This document shows, in pieces, positions 10,601 through 45,816 of a stretch of 64,000 bases of DNA. The position numbers and the translations under genes were made by a program. Source of the stretch: Tetramitus jugosus. Taxonomy: Eukaryota > Protista > Heterolobosea. The stretch lies in the NCBI GenBank assembly GCA_937625935.1, contig OW569368.1, positions 310,001 through 374,000 of the forward strand. Reading direction: 5' to 3'. The notes under the pieces are model-generated. The model ran no database searches. It saw only the letters and a list, made by a program, of their open reading frames with translations, and was not told the DNA's origin. How positions within the stretch are numbered: the stretch's first letter is position 1; every line of letters starts with the position of its first letter.

Positions 10601-13600
10601 TACATAAACTCACCGACATTCTGATCACTGAACAAGATAATACACTCGTAAGTACATCGAGTGATGAAAGGGAGATATTGTAACATGATCTTCTTCTTCT
10701 CTCCCCTTTTCAGAGGCAAGAAATCGGTCGTACACCAAAAGGCCTCGGGTACTGTAGACGTAGGCTGGTCACCTTTTTTGATTGACTGTTTGAGTGTTAC
10801 TGTAAATTGACAATTTTTGTCAAATGGGTTCTCTACTTCCAGTTCAATTTTCCTATTCTCATACACAATATTTGACACTTCGATGAGTTTTTGGAATCGT
10901 TCAGCAATTACATTAGTCCTCAGATTGAACACCATTGTAGCTGGATTGAAAGCTCCAGATCTTTTTGCCTGGAATGTTAGTCGAGCCTCGATTGGAGTGG
11001 AAAATTTAGGTGTGACATCTATTTGGAAGTTGTGTTTGGCCTTTGGCTTCAACGTTAATTTATCCTCCAATAGGATAAACGCCTTTGATCCTTCCAGAAA
11101 GACATTATACTCGATTAAATTTTTTGTGGGGTTGGTCATTTCTATATGTTTTGTTATTTTCTCTTGTAGATTTCCTGTAAATTCGACGGTTGTCTTAGGA
11201 ATGTACTGAGGAAGGGTTTGATATAGATAGACACAAAATAGTAGACTCTCTCTCGGATTAGCCGATAAAATATCATTGGTAGACACCACATAATCGAGTC
11301 GTGCTTCATTGAGAGCTGATACAATCAAGGACGCATTGTGTTCGAAATCACTTGGTTGATTAGGTTTTGAAATAAAACTTTCAAGTTTGTGACTAACATA
11401 AGGGATATGATTGAGAACTAGAGAGGCAAAAACCTTTCCGTCTCGAAGATCTTGTCCGAAATTGGTTACTCTTACTTCCTCGTCAGTGGGAAATTGCTTA
11501 TTCAGGTGAAAGGTCATCCATTTCAAAATAATGTTTTCTGCAGTTCCATAAACATTGCTGCCTGAAAATGCAACCTCAGGACCAGAAAATATTTCCTCAG
11601 ATAATCCCTTGGCTTGTCTTAGATTGATTCTACTCAGCTCAAAAACTTTGATAATTTGATACAGCACTGTTAACCAAGCTTCGACAGATCTATACCGGAA
11701 TTTTTTTTCTGTCATTCTTTTGTGAGAATGATAAGAATTAGGAAATCCTGGGTCAGTAGTTAACTTCTGAAATTCTTCATATGAGAGTAAGAATTCAGGT
11801 CTCACAGAATTTAACAATGCTCCATATGCCTTCAAAAAATTAAGTAACTCCTCATAGTGAATGTAAAGAGTTCTGATTGCTTCAAGTTTGCTTGCTGACA
11901 CCTTTGTTGGTCTCGATGGCGGTCTTTTCCCAGATAGATATTCTATTATGTCATACACTATTCCACCACTGGAGAAAATGATAGTTTTCATTAAATCATC
12001 CACAGGATTTGACAAAATGCTGACATTTAACCAATTTAGAAGTCGATCAATATTTTTCTTGCTATAAAGTTGCCTTAAAGGAGCATCACTAGTTGTGTGA
12101 ACGGAAAGACTTGTAGTTGTAGTATTTCCAGAATAAACCGAGAGTCGCGAAGAAAGAGCGTCATCTTCTCTTGTTATCTCGCTCCTCTCCTTCAAAACTA
12201 AGGTCACGGGCTTATTTTTTTGAGCTTCCAATCTGTAGATATCTCTATTATTGGCCAGGTAGGGATAATTTGTCAACAAGCAATTGTCTGACATACAACT
12301 GACACGTAGACTGTATTTGTTGCCATCATTGTCAAAGAAGTCTATCTTGGAAGTGAAGGATATGGGTTTCGAGGAACAAAATGTCAACTCCACTGGAATC
12401 TGGGTTTTTGTCGCAGTTAATTGTGTACCTTCAGGAAACAATAGTTTGATTGGAATCTTGGAAGTATCGATGGGTAAGCGGTGTTTTACGTCCAATCGCT
12501 CATATCCATCGTTGATTATTGTGAATACTTGGACTATTGGAATGTTCAGAGGTACAACAGGTAGAACTAACTCGGGAATATCGAAAGTTAATGCAGGATC
12601 AGCACCGATACCCATAAGTTGAATCTCAAAGTAACTCTTTTCTATTTCCTTGTCTAAAAATATAGGCAAGATGCAAGAGTACGTTCGCTTCTCTCTGGGC
12701 GTAAAATATATTAGCGCTTGGATTGTTTGACCTGGATTCAGGAATCCAGAGACAGGTTCCATCCAAAAATTTGGATCATCAAAGTTTCCTTTTCTCCATT
12801 CCAACTGAACTGAATCTTCGTTCGTAAAGGTGACTATACTCCTGTGAGGAAGAACTCTAGATTGCTCTAAAATTACTACTCTCTTTCCAAAATCCACAAC
12901 ATGATGAGATGTGATTAATCGAGGCTTGATAGCTCTAGCTCTTACCTCTCGATTAAATCCCATCATTGAAGGAGGAACTCCAGCTAAACTAAGTGCTAAT
13001 GTGAACTTATAGGAGTTAACTGACCGAGGTTTAAAAATAATATAGAATAGAAGACTGCTATTCGGTTCAACAGTGAGCTTGTATCTCCGGGATTCCTTCC
13101 TATCACCCTCCCCGTCGCTCAAAGAATCTAATCCATCTTCTGATCTACATTCATCGCCAGTGTCTGATGATTCAGGAGAATCGATGGTAATAGGTTCATC
13201 TCTATCCGTGGATTCTGTTACTGCTATCCCCTTTTCGTTTGCTATGTGGAAATCAGAGTAGTGGGAAAAATCCAGAAAGAGTACTGCAGGTATAGAACCT
13301 CCCACATTCTTGAATGTGATCTGACTCTTAGCGGATGAACCAACAAAAACATCACCAAAATTCAACAACCCTCCATCCATCTCCACCATCGGTATTTTTG
13401 CTTCACCAATGATAGGAACCTTCAAACTTCGCCCTCCTCTCACATTAATGAGGAGGTTCAGATTAATATTCTGGGCAGAGCTAGGACAAATTTCTAACAA
13501 TAATTTTTGAGTTGAACCTGCGGTCACTCTTCCCCTCATAGGTGTAATCTTGATATCAGCTACAGTGTCTATGTTGAACACAGCAGCATTCTCACTCACA

Positions 13601-20648: not shown

Positions 20649-23041
20649 TTACACAAACAAAGAGATTCTCCCTTCCTTCTTTGCAGATACAATGCGCTTT
20701 GTTTCGATATATTCCATGACCAGATTGCTAATAGACCTGTTATTATTCTCATGTTCCACAATGGTGGCGTAATGCTTGAGTGCTGTGTATCCATCACCAC
20801 CACTCAGCATATAGTTGGTTGAACAAATGTTGTAGACTCTTTCGGGATCGATTGGTTCTCCATTCAGCTCAAATTGCTTCACTCGCTGCATTGGCTTCTC
20901 CAGTTTATCAAATACAAGGCGACAACCCTTTGATAAGTGAGGGAATGCACCAAGATTGAGTTCTGCTTTGGAGAGACCCTGTTCCAATGCTTCAATCAAA
21001 TATTGTCCTTTTATACATTGGAGGGAAACACCACTAGGAAATGGAAATTCCTTATAAATATCACCTCTTGTAATTTCATAACCAGCATCATAGGTTCTAT
21101 CACCTCGAATCGATCCTCCATTAATAATGGCCAAATCTGCATTGAATGTCTCCAATAAGACATCTGCAATCAAATTTCCCATTGTTGTTTCCTTAGATCG
21201 AACAGAGTCAGAATAGGAATTCAATTTCGTTTCAGTGACGCCAATAATATCATTGTAATCGCTCGGTAACTTTGATTGATAATAATCGACAACTGATTTT
21301 ACATTCGGGTCAGGTTCATATCCTCTGTTCATAATCATTTTCCATTCCGGAAATACGTGAACTTGTTTAAACTCTTTTCCGAATGGATGAGTCACTGTTT
21401 TCTCAACAATCAATTTAATGTTGCCCAGGTATTGACCATTGACACCAGCTTTATGAATAAAAACTCCCTTTTGCTGGTTGGTTATGACACTGTGATCGTG
21501 TCCTCCCAATTCGACATCTATGCCTCGGACTTCCTCGGCCAACCGCTACATTGTTCACATCACAAAGCAAGTGAGACAAAGGTGTCAGTATCACTACTAC
21601 AATGTCCGCTTGTGCAGGCACACGCACAAGGGTGCACATACTAATCATATAAAATCACAATAGGAAACACATACATTATCATCCTTGATACTCAAATGAG
21701 TGAGTGCGATAACAACATCGACTCCATCATCCTCTCTCAATTCCTTGACCATTTTTCGCGCAGTGTCAATAATATCTCTAAACTCAATTTCATCACCAGG
21801 CTGAGACAAGTTCTTGGTCGCTGGTGTACACAGACCAAATATTCCAATTTTAATCTCGTCCATGGGCTCTCCTGCTTGAACACCACGATCACATGGCACT
21901 GTCAATACGACCTTTGACACCATCCCGTTCATAATCTTGTTCGTGTTCTTGTAAAAAATATTGCTACACTACAAAAGGACAATCGACAATGGAAACAAAG
22001 AATACAATGTAACACACACATATATGGTTGTCAGCCATCATATATCACCTTGAATCACAAAGCACAAAAACTATAAGAGAAACACACCACACTTACAATC
22101 CATTTGAACTTTGATTCACGTATTCGCTTCTCGAGCACCGTACTACCAAAATCAAATTCGTGATTCCCTGGCACGACATACTGAATTGGCATCTGATTCA
22201 TTATTTTGATCATGTGAGCACCTTGATATCTGTTTTATCACCAACCAACAAACAAACAAATTGTCAGAGTCAGTGATGCTGAACTTTTACACTCATGTGC
22301 ACAACATGTTGCACGTAGAGAGAAGAAAAACAAGCAATCAAACACAAAATAAAGATCTTGTTTTGTTCAACAATAAAGTGTGAGATGGTGAGAGATATAC
22401 ACATACCTGAATGCCAATTGACTCGCACTCAAAAAATCGCCATTCAACGTCACAATACAATGATTGAGATTATTGTTGTGCTTTCTTTCAATGTTCATCC
22501 TCTCTTGCTTCATAATGGTTGATAGCTCTGCTAAACCACCCAGTTTTCTATGATCGGGCACCAACTCATACACATCATTCACCATGAGAATATTGAATTC
22601 TGTTCCTGAGATTTTGGGTTGTGGTGGTGTGGACATTGATAATTTTTTGTCTTGCAAAATTTGTTGTTGTTGATTGTCGAGAGTCAGTTCATTTGTTGAT
22701 GTTGTTGACCGTTGATAGCTTGAGTGATGATAACGGCACAATAGCAAACAAGATGATTTGTTGTTGTAATGTTCATGTTGGTGTGCTGTGAATCTTGATC
22801 GTGTTATCAAAAACTTTGATATTGAGGAAGAATGGCTGTTCAGTCGTTGATGATGATAGTGTCGTGCTGCTGATTGAGTCCGATTGGAGAGTGGAGGATA
22901 ACAGCACACACCACCATGATTCTTTGTTATTGTTGATGTGGAGGTGTATGGATGATGGACAGTGGAGACTGGACAACAAGAGTTCACTGTCTGATATGTG
23001 GCCTTGAGCAGTGACGGAACTGATTGATTTTTTGCAAGCAT
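20649..23041 (-). CDS. 5'-nucleotidase / UshA-type metallophosphoesterase; exons 23041-22407, 22229-22097, 21968-21675, 21545-20649 (start uncertain)
   Basis: Spliced product contains NDVY, GDFLS, GNHEFDFG (in an exon missing from the ORF track), ALTHL, GGHDH, and the C-domain motifs VRSKETTMGNLIAD and NGGSIR. Introns 22230-22406, 21969-22096 and 21546-21674 are all GT-AG and frame-consistent. Confidence 0.9.
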
Positions 23042-23250
23042 TCGTTGCAAAATCCGAGTCCGTGCCAAAAAACCCAAGAAAAAAAAGTCGGAGCAACAAA
23101 ACATCAAAAAACACCAATCCGTTCGATGAACTGCCACCTATTCACTTAACACATTTCTAGCAATAGAAACTGGCGAATAACAGCGGCAACTCCAAAATTT
23201 TTTAAAATTGGAGGTTTTCTGAAATAGTTAATGATTTCTAAGAAATAACA

Positions 23251-23292
23251 ATTGTGGCTCCCGCAACACCGGTTCGATTCCGGTAGGCGGCA
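23251..23292 (+). tRNA. Isolated 3' half of tRNA-His(GUG), positions ~31-73; 5' half absent
   Basis: A-TTGTGGC (anticodon loop, GTG)-TCCCG-CAAC-ACCGG TTCGATT CCGGT (perfect T arm/B box)-AGGCGGC-A, then ATTTTT. The upstream sequence cannot supply the acceptor strand GCCGCCT or the anticodon strand CGGGA. Confidence 0.75.
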
Positions 23293-23402
23293 ATTTTTAG
23301 GACTGCAATTTGCTTCGGCGGAACTTGCGGTCAACGAACACTTTGGTGGCTTTTTTATTTGTATTCATCATCGATATTGGTAGACCCAGCCCGAAAAAAA
23401 TA

Positions 23403-23714
23403 ATGAATTGGTTTCGAACAAGTCCCAGTGAAGACACCTCTAAGAATTCTGCCCAGAGTCAAATGACTGTTGACGCAACATTAGCTCATCAGAAACAAAC
23501 GATGGACGACCAAGATAAAATGATTGATAAGATGATTGAGAGCCTTGGCCGAATAAAAAGTGTTGCTGAAGCTTTTGGACCAGAACTAGACAACCAAAAT
23601 AAGGAACTTATTGAACTGGATAACGAGGTCCACTCGATCAATGGAAAACTGAAAAGAGAAACCAAGAGAGTTGAGAAATTGTTGGACAAGAAGCCTTGGT
23701 GGCAAATATGGTAA
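23403..23714 (+). CDS. Small Qc-type SNARE-motif protein lacking a transmembrane anchor
   Basis: DDQDKMIDKMIESLGRIKSVAEAFGPELDNQNKELIELDNEV is a t-SNARE coiled coil with a central Q; the protein ends KKPWWQIW. Confidence 0.75.
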   Translation: MNWFRTSPSEDTSKNSAQSQMTVDATLAHQKQTMDDQDKMIDKMIESLGRIKSVAEAFGPELDNQNKELIELDNEVHSINGKLKRETKRVEKLLDKKPWWQIW

Positions 23715-24035
23715 AGTGTTTGTCACGAGGTGGATCAAATGTCCGTCAGTGAAACAAGTGCACATGGATTATTCTCAATCTCGTGGGAAGAATTGGTAGG
23801 ATTTTCGTATGGGAATCCTTCACTAGAGCCAGTTCCAGAGGAAAACAGGGACAGGACTCGAAAACCAAAATTTTCCAATTCAATTTTTCTGTAAATACTT
23901 TCTCCGATTGCCGTTAAACATCACCTTCTGTTCCTTGAAACAATGGAATGCTTTTTGCTGTTTCGTTTTCCTCCATTTTCGAACAATAAAAACAACAACA
24001 AACAGAAAACCACAGACCGTTATTTAGGAAAGAGA

Positions 24036-24605
24036 ATGATGGAAGACCAAGAAAACTATGATTACACTGCTGACTACGATCCCAGCAACAGTAGTTGTTC
24101 GGGATCCATGTTACCGGATGACCACTCGGCCAATTGTACCATGTCCACGATTGACATCAATACAGTCGTATTGACTCCAAAAAAGGTGAGAGCTCGGTCG
24201 TCCTCTTTTACCACTGCCTCAAGCTCCAATGGCATTCAAAAGAAGACACCTCAGAGATCTACTCTTCCTCGGTCCGTACTCACCTCGCCCAGAAGCTCCA
24301 CCAAGAAGACTGGTGGTCGATCAAGACAAACACCGTCCAGGATCATGAATCAAGTTGCAGATCAAGTGTGCAAGAAGATTGTTCGAAGAAAATTAGAGTT
24401 GGATGATGAGGATTTCTTGTGTAAGGAAACAGATGGAACTGTAAAGCTTTTGACGGGCGAGTCCGTGTTGGATCGGAATGGATGTGAATTGAAGATGGAT
24501 ATGGACATGACAGACCTACAAAAGAGATATATTATGCATGTCAAGGGTAGTGTTGTGGCGGGTGAAGGTCTCATGAATCAACTAAGCACTTTTTCATTGA
24601 ACTAA
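24036..24605 (+). CDS. Hypothetical Ser/Thr-rich basic protein
   Basis: ATG after a CA-rich leader; several S/T-P-x-K/R sites. Confidence 0.65.
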   Translation: MMEDQENYDYTADYDPSNSSCSGSMLPDDHSANCTMSTIDINTVVLTPKKVRARSSSFTTASSSNGIQKKTPQRSTLPRSVLTSPRSSTKKTGGRSRQTPSRIMNQVADQVCKKIVRRKLELDDEDFLCKETDGTVKLLTGESVLDRNGCELKMDMDMTDLQKRYIMHVKGSVVAGEGLMNQLSTFSLN

Positions 24606-41648: not shown

Positions 41649-41721
41649 GGGGTCATGGCTCAGTTGGTAGAGCGCGTGCTTTGCATGCATGAGGTCCAGG
41701 GTTCGATTCCCTGTGGCTCCA
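41649..41721 (+). tRNA. tRNA-Ala(UGC), intact and intronless
   Basis: Full cloverleaf: GGGGTCA/TGGCTCC acceptor with G3:U70, D arm GCTC/GAGC, anticodon TGC, T arm CAGGG TTCGATT CCCTG, then TTTTT. Confidence 0.97.
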
Positions 41722-43699: not shown

Positions 43700-45816
43700 A
43701 TGACGTCTTATCAACCCACACAAAGTGAGATCTTAAATTATGACCCAAATGAACAGTTCACATACCCTGAACCTTCATTCAAACTGAATAAAAGCTTAGC
43801 CAACGTGTTAGCTATTGACAATCTTCCACTCACAGAGGCATCAAAGGCCGAAAAGATGAGTGCTGTCATACAAAAGGTCTTTGAGAAGAAGGCCAGTATT
43901 GTTCCAATTGATTTCTATATGCCGATCGATGAAGCAACAGGACAAACGAAAGGGTACGCTTTTTTTTTCACGTCTTTTTTCACCAAGCTCTTTTTTTTTT
44001 GATTGCTAACAATCACAATCACACACAATCACTATCCAATCAACACAATCACACACATGATAGATTTGCATTTGTTGAATTCGCTACACCTACACAAGCA
44101 AAGTCTGCTCTTGAAAAAGTGCAAGGATTTGCTTTCACAAAGAAGAATGATCTAGTATTGTACAGTGTGAGTGACTGGGAAAAGTATGAAACTTTTGATG
44201 AGAATACCGTTGAGAAACCAACTGCCGAACCATTCAAAGAACAAGAAGACTTGTCCACATGGCTCTCTGATGAACAAGCGAGAGATCAATATGCCATCAA
44301 ACATCACGATACAGTTCAAGTGCTATGGAATGACCCTCATCACAAACTTGTCAATGTTCATTCAAGAGAACACTGGACAGATGATGCAATCATGTGGTCA
44401 CCACAAGGATCCTATCTCGTTACATTCCACAAGAAGGGTCTCGCTCTTTGGGGAGGTGAAAATTGGAAGATTCAATCCTCCTTGTCATTCAAAAATGTTC
44501 GCTTGTGCCACTTTTCACCAAATGAAAAGTATGTTGTTGCCATGAATGATGATCCAAGAGACAATGTTGCTATTTTCGATGTGAGGACCAAGAAGAAGGA
44601 AATTTTCACTGCAAACGACATTATTGCCCGTTTGCCAGAGGGAAGATGGCCAGTTTTCCACTGGAGTTATGACTCAAAGTATTTTGCTCGCTTGGGTGGT
44701 GATGATGAGTTGGAAGTGTACGAGTCTTCGACAATGAAACTCTTGGGAGGAAAGCCATTGCGCATTGATGGTATTCAAACATTCTCCTGGTGTCCAAACA
44801 AGAACATCATTGCTTATTGGTCCCCTGAATACAATGGTATTCCAGCCAAGATTGCCTTGATGGAAATACCAAAGTTGAGAGAAGTGAGAAGCAAGAACTT
44901 GTTCAAGGTGTTGAATGTTCAAATGGTATGGCATCCAGATGGTGACTACTTGAGTGCAGCTGTGGACAGTGAAGTGGTTAAGAAGTCTGTCAAGGTGAAG
45001 CAGACGACACTCGAACTCTTCAGAATGAACCAAAAGGGTGTTCCAGTTGAAGTTCAAGAAGTCAAGGAAACGCTCATCACTGTGGCATGGGAACCAAAGG
45101 GTGACCGATTTGCCATCATTCATGGTGACCAGCAGTTGAAGAAGCACGTTTCATTCTACACAATGAATGGTCCAAATCAAAGCTGCAAATTGCTCAAGAT
45201 GCTTGAGCCAAAGCAAGTCGACAGTCTGTTCTGGTCTCCTCGTGGTATCAACCTCGTTGTTGCCAACACAAAGTCTAGCACTGCCACTCTGGAATTCTGG
45301 AATGCTGATTCACTTGAGCCAATTGGTTATGGTGAGCACTTTGGTATGACGAATGCCAGCTGGGATCCAACTGGTAGATACTTCTGTACTTATGTCAGTG
45401 CTCACAAGCGTGCTGCTGATCTTGGTTTCATCATTTGGACTTTCTTGGGACGTACTCTTCACAAGAACAACATTGATATGTTGTATGAGTTCCACTGGCG
45501 CCCACGTCCACCTACTCTGCTGACTCCAGTACAAGAGAAGAAGGTCAAGAAGAACTTTAGAGAACTTGCCAAGCAAATCGAAAAAGAAGTTAAGGCTAGA
45601 GATGAGAAGGTTAAGGAAGGCTTGCTTAAGGAACGCCAAGAACAATGGGACGAATTTATGGAATTCTTGGCTCGTATCAAGGAAGAATATGCTGAGATGA
45701 AGGAAGAAAGAGCCAAGATTAGAGGTTATGAAAGTGACGAAGACGAATGGTATGACATCAAGGAAGAAACAGTGGAACAAGTTGTTGAAGTCATTGAAGA
45801 AGAAGTCACCAATTAA
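43700..45816 (+). CDS. EIF3B: Eukaryotic translation initiation factor 3 subunit B; exons 43700-43953, 44064-45816
   Basis: RRM RNP1 TKGFAFVEF is formed across intron 43954-44063; beta-propeller WSPQGSYL, WDPTGRY, WRPRPPTLL. Confidence 0.95.

Follow-up and report, generated by a model that had tools for sequence, protein, structure and literature searches.

In prokaryotes, duplicated tRNA 3′ ends mark integration (att) sites, and in yeast TFIIIC is found at isolated B boxes, the extra-TFIIIC (ETC) sites. A different kind of free-standing tRNA piece is presented by split tRNAs, in which two separately encoded halves carry complementary leaders that form a bulge-helix-bulge motif; a review of disrupted tRNA genes tabulates them only in Archaea (PMC4033280). 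In Nanoarchaeum equitans and Caldivirga maquilingensis, for example, the 3′ half stands by itself behind a leader that is not tRNA (PMC4033280, PMC3218864), while the permuted tRNA genes of Cyanidioschyzon merolae and prasinophyte algae place the 3′ half first in the DNA (PMC3978253, PMC3728597). The locus considered here, a 3′ half of tRNA-His(GUG) that begins at position 23251 of a 64-kb window (G000:C25:310001-374000; positions are those of this window unless a contig is named), resembles both of the latter systems at first sight, and a first-pass annotation of the window had put forward a split or trans-spliced half-gene as its headline. Searches over the whole of the 26.35-Mb assembly G000 (56 contigs) lead us to a more modest conclusion: the 23251 locus is very probably what is left of a normal nuclear gene for tRNA-His(GUG), that is, a 5′-truncated pseudogene.

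The retained half is faultless. On the plus strand, 23251-23292 reads as 42 nt of tRNA-His(GUG), positions 31-73, discriminator included. It opens on A31 (23251), the last base of the 5′ anticodon stem strand, and continues through the anticodon loop TTGTGGC with its GTG anticodon (23252-23258), the 3′ anticodon stem TCCCG (23259-23263), the variable region CAAC (23264-23267), the T arm ACCGG/TTCGATT/CCGGT (23268-23284), the acceptor 3′ strand AGGCGGC (23285-23291) and the discriminator A (23292). The B box, GGTTCGATTCC, lies at 23271-23281. Immediately behind the half come a native-type 3′ trailer and Pol III terminator (23293-23298), an A at 23293 followed by T5 at 23294-23298; each intact tRNA-His gene of the genome likewise has a short trailer and T-run of its own. 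All 42 positions are identical to the 3′ part of the genome’s ten intact tRNA-His(GUG) genes, and because a reversed-pattern control for the 3′-half search returned no matches, this identity is far beyond chance. The first-pass reading of 23251-23292 as roughly tRNA positions 31-73 without defect, with a T5 tract behind, thus holds to the base.

Gene finders pass over the locus. ARAGORN calls no tRNA at 23251-23292, and the only tRNA that it reports in the 64-kb window is a tRNA-Ala at 41649-41721; the Rfam tRNA model RF00005 finds no match in 22000-24500, even at E<=10. One weak Rfam match to a piece of tmRNA (23261-23321) falls far under its gathering score and was taken as chance. Partial-length homology (42/42), together with the lack of a cloverleaf and of any call by ARAGORN or RF00005, is what a truncated pseudogene presents, and it is this possibility, the last on the first-pass list, that our analysis supports.

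No 5′ half of tRNA-His was found upstream, downstream or anywhere else in the 64-kb window, as the first-pass annotation had also reported. Within the window, the pattern GCCGCCT...CGGGA matches only the reverse strand of the half itself, which is trivial. Nor is a degenerate 5′ half hidden in the leader: the true 5′ half and the 30 nt that precede the junction agree at 9 of 30 positions, mostly differing by transversions, and since this is about the level expected from composition, the 5′ half is absent rather than degenerate. A circularly permuted gene was rejected as well, since 23298 is followed by unique spacer and then by a protein-coding gene, with no 5′ half in the window; the earlier exclusion of a simple permuted gene is thereby confirmed.

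The search for a partner was extended to the genome. A 41-nt version of the 3′ half has 11 mismatch-free copies in the assembly, ten of them in complete genes and the eleventh at the 23251 locus. The ten intact tRNA-His(GUG) genes, 71-72 nt long as called by ARAGORN, share one sequence and lie on nine other contigs; the existence of intact genes elsewhere had been proposed as a check, and all ten carry exactly the same 3′ sequence. They also reveal the true 5′ half, GCTGCTTTAGTATAGTGGTAGTACACGGGA, which runs GCTGCTT...CGGGA with G·U pairs in the acceptor stem. The 5′ acceptor strand assumed at first, GCCGCCT, was not quite right: the real strand is GCTGCTT, with three G·U pairs. At up to three mismatches, the true 5′ half occurs exactly ten times in the genome, each copy joined to its own 3′ half. 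A structure pattern for any compatible 5′ half, GCYGCYTT-N5-A-N2-4-GG-N6-10-CGGGA, which takes in the acceptor strand, U8, A14, G18G19 and the anticodon-stem strand, returned the same ten intact genes and nothing else when run genome-wide. Thus the assembly holds no orphan 5′ half of tRNA-His, whether sought by sequence (<=3 mismatches) or by structure pattern, and the pattern search suggested in the first-pass annotation for a separate 5′ half has given only the intact genes. To judge from gene content, histidine decoding is done by these ten copies elsewhere.

Two further observations concern the tRNA complement as a whole. Paralogous tRNA genes are strikingly uniform here, the 5′ halves being identical in all ten His copies, in all 13 Arg(TCT) copies and in 17 of the 18 Ile(AAT) copies, a pattern that fits concerted evolution or very recent amplification. 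Contigs C54 and C56, for their part, give identical matches to AT-rich tRNAs of organelle type at equal coordinates (e.g. 12773-12844 and 44585-44656), which suggests that the assembly contains two copies of one, probably mitochondrial, sequence.

What these searches mean for a split tRNA gene, in which a leader-bearing 3′ half would pair with a separately encoded 5′ half and be trans-spliced to it, is plain enough. The anatomy is suggestive, with a flawless 3′ half that starts from the anticodon loop, a leader and a terminator, and it is the anatomy only that speaks for such an arrangement. No orphan 5′ half exists by sequence or structure pattern, so there is no separate 5′ half to be joined; with ten intact genes at hand a split copy is not needed, and no otherwise-unencoded tRNA would be supplied by it. 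The leader is AT-rich, folds without significance and has neither a second copy nor a detectable complement in the genome (BLAST, both strands). Moreover, split tRNAs are tabulated for Archaea only (PMC4033280), and a break at 30/31 corresponds to no known eukaryotic splice position. We therefore regard a split tRNA gene as scarcely credible. The first-pass headline fails on the very grounds that its author had named as fatal to it, namely intact genes (ten) with no orphan 5′ half. In essence, the outcome is mostly negative: what appeared to be the first eukaryotic split tRNA is in all likelihood an ordinary remnant, and there is no new tRNA biology to claim.

The leader itself repays a closer look. 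Its sequence from 23090 to 23251 is single-copy, matching only itself genome-wide on both strands by BLAST, and the same search detected no complement of it on either strand, at a sensitivity that AT-rich complements of 12-14 nt would escape. Both of the hairpins ascribed to the leader do exist on the plus strand: a 6-bp inverted repeat, CTCCAA/TTGGAG, at 23190-23213 (arms 23190-23195 and 23208-23213), which bears no sign of function, and a second one, TTCTGAAAT/ATTTCTAAGAA, at 23217-23225 and 23234-23244. The 111-nt stretch as a whole, however, folds no better than shuffled sequence (z = -1.15, with 23 of 200 shuffles equally good), which is not significant. An A-box-like element had also been proposed, TAGTTAATGATT at 23225-23236. 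Set against TRGCNNAGTGG, in which 9 positions are specified, it agrees at no more than about 5; the AGTGG core is missing, and the string does not stand as an A box.

A link to tRNA genes lies farther upstream. The 16-mer TTTTCTGAAATAGTTA (23215-23230, plus strand), which starts 37 nt before the junction, has two exact copies in the genome, and the other is located at -41..-26 of an intact tRNA-His gene, C43:280814. Its first seven bases (23215-23221) belong to a motif, TTTTCT[AG]. Of a sample of 37 intact nuclear tRNA genes, 8 (L010, L030-L032, L035 and L047-L049) have this motif with its start at -41..-57, against a background of 0.9% per equivalent segment (binomial p~1e-9 for the enrichment). 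Repeats end at -41..-58 in front of 9 of the 37 intact genes, and the motif may either be associated with these or serve as an upstream element for Pol III. No tRNA-associated repeat of this kind adjoins the remnant at 23251, and the leader has no homology to those repeats; being single-copy besides, it was rejected as the end of a mobile element.

Between the 16-mer and the junction, the leader ATGATTTCTAAGAAATAACA (23231-23250, plus strand) is single-copy and fills the position where the proximal upstream DNA and the 5′ half would otherwise lie. It was considered as a native His upstream region by means of a position weight matrix built from the ten upstream regions, and rejected: it scored in the top 0.3-0.4% of window positions, but about 60 offsets had been tried, and the resemblance to the CGGAGAA box of intact genes is thus weak and not significant. 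The box itself is a separate observation. CGGAGAA (CGGACAA in L011) starts 16-18 nt upstream of six of the ten intact tRNA-His genes (L003, L004, L005, L007, L010 and L011), and looks like an isoacceptor-specific proximal upstream box of tRNA-His.

The remnant occupies a 361-bp spacer between two protein-coding genes. Upstream, on the minus strand, is a gene with a 5′-nucleotidase C-terminal domain (Pfam, E = 6.9e-34); downstream, at 23403-23714 on the plus strand, a 103-aa ORF encodes a small coiled-coil protein with one close relative, P0001, among 5.8 billion proteins. The Pfam matches of this ORF are all sub-threshold (Snapin/Pallidin at 22.2 bits against a cut-off of 29.6, and Use1 at 16.1 against 38.3). 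Two other matches near the locus, to the Rfam families DdR4 and SNORD39-like at 22721-22906, were far under their gathering scores and were taken as chance.

The protein relative P0001, at 98% identity, is encoded on an ENA metagenome contig, L057, which also preserves the neighborhood. L057 starts inside the tRNA (CGGTTCGATTCCGGTAGGCGGCA), continues with the same ATTTTT and leads to the same gene; the 5′ part of the tRNA lies beyond the contig end. Over the tRNA 3′ end and T-run, the window and L057 are identical at 29 of 29 positions, and over the coding sequence at 307 of 312 (98.4%), while the 104-bp spacer between them (window 23299-23402, L057:30-152) is only 54% identical, with indels. 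Runs X1 and X4 contain the form seen in L057 too, as a second allele with its joint at 23298 to 23395, and contigs there break in the repeat; the DNA downstream of the coding sequence is 100% identical in the two allelic forms. Given that the same tRNA 3′ end and ATTTTT recur in L057 and the second allele, the tRNA locus predates the split from this allele, and the mere 54% identity of the spacer beside the remnant marks the site as prone to rearrangement. Two forms in reads that are labelled as one organism point to an isolate that is heterozygous (diploid?) or mixed, with a local structural variant. The forms differ in addition by 3- and 6-nt indels at 22791-22938, which fit a coding, repeat-rich N-terminal extension of the 5′-nucleotidase gene better than they fit the weak snoRNA-like Rfam matches at 22721-22906. 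Scans of metagenome contigs for the tRNA end with trailer, and for the start of the downstream coding sequence, gave no matches; with the 5′-nucleotidase exon as query, the contig obtained, L060, was more distant (76% nucleotide identity), lacked a tRNA and offered no usable synteny.

This setting also bears on the idea of an integration scar, whereby a mobile element would have recombined within a tRNA-His gene and duplicated its 3′ half, much as prokaryotic att sites are marked by duplicated tRNA 3′ ends. Contig C25 holds no other tRNA-His, the sole tRNA in the window being the tRNA-Ala at 41649, the flanks of the remnant are single-copy, and ordinary genes stand on both sides. The first-pass annotation had listed such a scar among its options; on this evidence we consider it implausible in the extreme.

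Could the junction simply be wrong? Repeats are the classic place for misjoins, and the half is an 11-copy repeat, so that an assembly artefact, with the tRNA-His repeat misjoined to unrelated sequence, has to be weighed. We aligned contigs from four public runs (X1, X2, X4 and X9, of which only X9 is recorded as RNA) to 22700-23800. Record 13 of run X2, which carries the same-organism label, is a 104-nt k-mer contig identical to 23176-23279. It runs from unique leader into the half by 28 nt and ends where a 31-mer graph must branch, the branch point being the 11-copy repeat; it bridges the left junction by those 28 nt, against the at least 31 asked for, and its run may share the assembly’s own sample. 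On the other side, contigs from X1 and X2 start at the expected branch point (23268 and 23277) and run through to 23430, linking the half to the downstream gene, and the right-hand junction is seen independently in L057. We take the junction as real; a misassembly there is unlikely, and we give the artefact very little credence.

The 23251 locus is not the only remnant of its kind. Among the tRNA families surveyed, Arg(TCT) has 13 5′ halves and 13 3′ halves, all joined, whereas Ile(AAT) has 18 5′ halves against 20 3′ halves. The surplus consists of two sister remnants: L058, which ends at 203158 of G000:C50 and starts at tRNA position 11, and L059 (G000:C51:183632-183672), which starts at U33 in the anticodon loop. 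In both, the retained part is 100% identical to intact tRNA-Ile(AAT) genes and is followed by a T-run of its own. Upstream of L058, a tRNA-associated repeat is still in place, ending at 55 nt. Over His, Ile(AAT) and Arg(TCT) together, three orphan 3′ parts contrast with no orphan 5′ part, an imbalance that is not significant (p~0.125). That the B-box half was kept in all three could hint at retention of TFIIIC-binding pieces.

A further upstream sequence was noted at tRNA-Ile loci. The pattern TCT[AG]AA[ACT]ATAG has nine strict matches in 355 kb of sequence (both strands), eight of them sense-strand and upstream of tRNA-Ile genes; the sense matches end exactly at -38 (four genes) or -3 (three genes). 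The tRNA-Ile(AAT) loci concerned are L033-L037, L044 and L049, with L036 and L054 representing one overlapping place, and the ninth match (L038) has no tRNA assignment.

Taken with the leader and the second allele, the sister remnants help to choose between two routes by which a truncated copy might arise. One is retro-copying, in which a 5′-truncated tRNA-His precursor was reverse-transcribed and inserted by LINE machinery. All three remnants are truncated on the 5′ side, as incomplete reverse transcription would give, and the trailer ATTTT at the His locus is the same as that of an intact copy, L002. Yet there is no CCA, poly-A or target-site duplication around 23251-23298, and since the second allele or relative has this tRNA end and trailer at the corresponding place, any insertion is not recent. 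The leader, in addition, contains an upstream motif of tRNA type. The Ile remnants point the same way: their trailers differ from all 17 trailers seen at intact Ile genes, which argues against retro-copies of precursors from existing genes, and the repeat upstream of L058 lies at a distance typical of a resident gene. A retro-copied origin accordingly strikes us as most unlikely.

The other route, loss in situ at a resident gene, is the one we favor, although with clearly less assurance than the identification of the locus as a truncated pseudogene. According to this model, a whole tRNA-His gene would once have stood in the 361-bp spacer between the 5′-nucleotidase gene and the small coiled-coil gene. 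A local deletion or rearrangement of some 34-50 bp would then have taken the start region and tRNA positions 1-30, that is, the 30 nt of the 5′ half and 4-20 nt of proximal upstream DNA. The junction would have formed at the 5′ edge of the anticodon loop, where one base (A) is common to both sides, leaving the distal upstream element, positions 31-73 with their B box, and the T5 terminator. The size estimate follows from spacing: with the motif 37 nt before the junction, as compared with -41..-57 in intact genes, the former +1 would fall at about 23256-23272, so that about 34-50 bp would be missing. As an inference, the in-place model draws mainly on one 16-mer and one motif, together with the age of the locus as seen in L057 and the second allele. 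We infer from sequence both the size of the loss and the lack of function of what is left.

The retained 42 nt contain no substitutions. Because a neutral relic should decay, this perfection implies that the event is young, that the fragment has been converted by intact copies, or that it is under constraint, and the last of these raises the prospect that the remnant is dead as a tRNA gene and nonetheless active as a Pol III/TFIIIC element. Such activity might take the form of TFIIIC bound at the B box, insulating the two divergent genes, or of a short RNA, about 45 nt long, similar to a 3′-tRNA half. A perfect B box, GGTTCGATTCC, a T5 terminator and an upstream motif of tRNA type some 30-37 nt ahead of the half would all suit that role. 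So would the conservation, with 42 nt unmutated here and 29 of 29 identical in the relative despite an adjacent spacer of 54% identity, as well as the persistence of the B-box half in three of three remnants. On the other hand, there is no A box. Contigs from the metatranscriptome X9 include nothing on the leader, and the X9 contig that covers the half comes from an intact tRNA-His at a different locus. Unlike 9 of the 37 intact genes, the remnant has no tRNA-targeting repeat upstream. Identity to the intact copies is equally well explained by a recent event or gene conversion, and the gene in the relative may simply be intact. We consider an active element, an option that the first-pass list also included, improbable. 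The broader proposition, that this genome keeps its 5′-truncated tRNA genes as functional Pol III/TFIIIC elements and not as junk, seems slightly more doubtful still; were it true, such remnants would bind TFIIIC as a boundary, or encode a 3′-tRNA-half-like RNA without cleavage of a mature tRNA.

Whatever their activity, truncated genes of this type are modestly informative. The His locus and the two Ile remnants indicate 5′ loss from tRNA genes in this genome, with the B-box half surviving free of mutations, and the spacing of the newly noticed TTTTCT[AG] motif (-41..-57) may be used to date and size such losses. Remnants with a B box and a terminator are, moreover, natural test cases for whether a B box and an upstream element together suffice to recruit Pol III factors, or tRNA-targeting retroelements.

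How, then, does the 23251 locus compare with the systems described at the outset? It shares with archaeal split tRNAs a free-standing 3′ half behind a non-tRNA leader. It differs from them in having no partner half and no detected complementary leader or bulge-helix-bulge motif, in coexisting with intact genes, and in its host, a eukaryote, a domain for which no split tRNA is tabulated. Permuted genes are alike in that the 3′ half comes first in the DNA; in them the 5′ half follows in the same short locus, whereas the remnant has none in the window and no unpaired one in the genome. With the ETC sites and isolated B boxes of yeast, the locus has in common a flawless B box outside any functional tRNA gene, placed between divergent Pol II genes, and at 23271-23281 GGTTCGATTCC agrees with the consensus B box, GGTTCGANTCC, that would be expected of an ETC-like TFIIIC site; the difference is that this B box belongs to a recent gene fragment and is not a conserved stand-alone motif. 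The nearest kin are the known partial copies of tRNA genes, which are likewise intergenic, uncalled by gene finders and accompanied by many intact paralogues. Compared with old decayed or SINE-like tRNA copies, the remnant is unmutated and has kept its native trailer, terminator and upstream motif, and it looks like a young in-place deletion rather than a copy of either kind.
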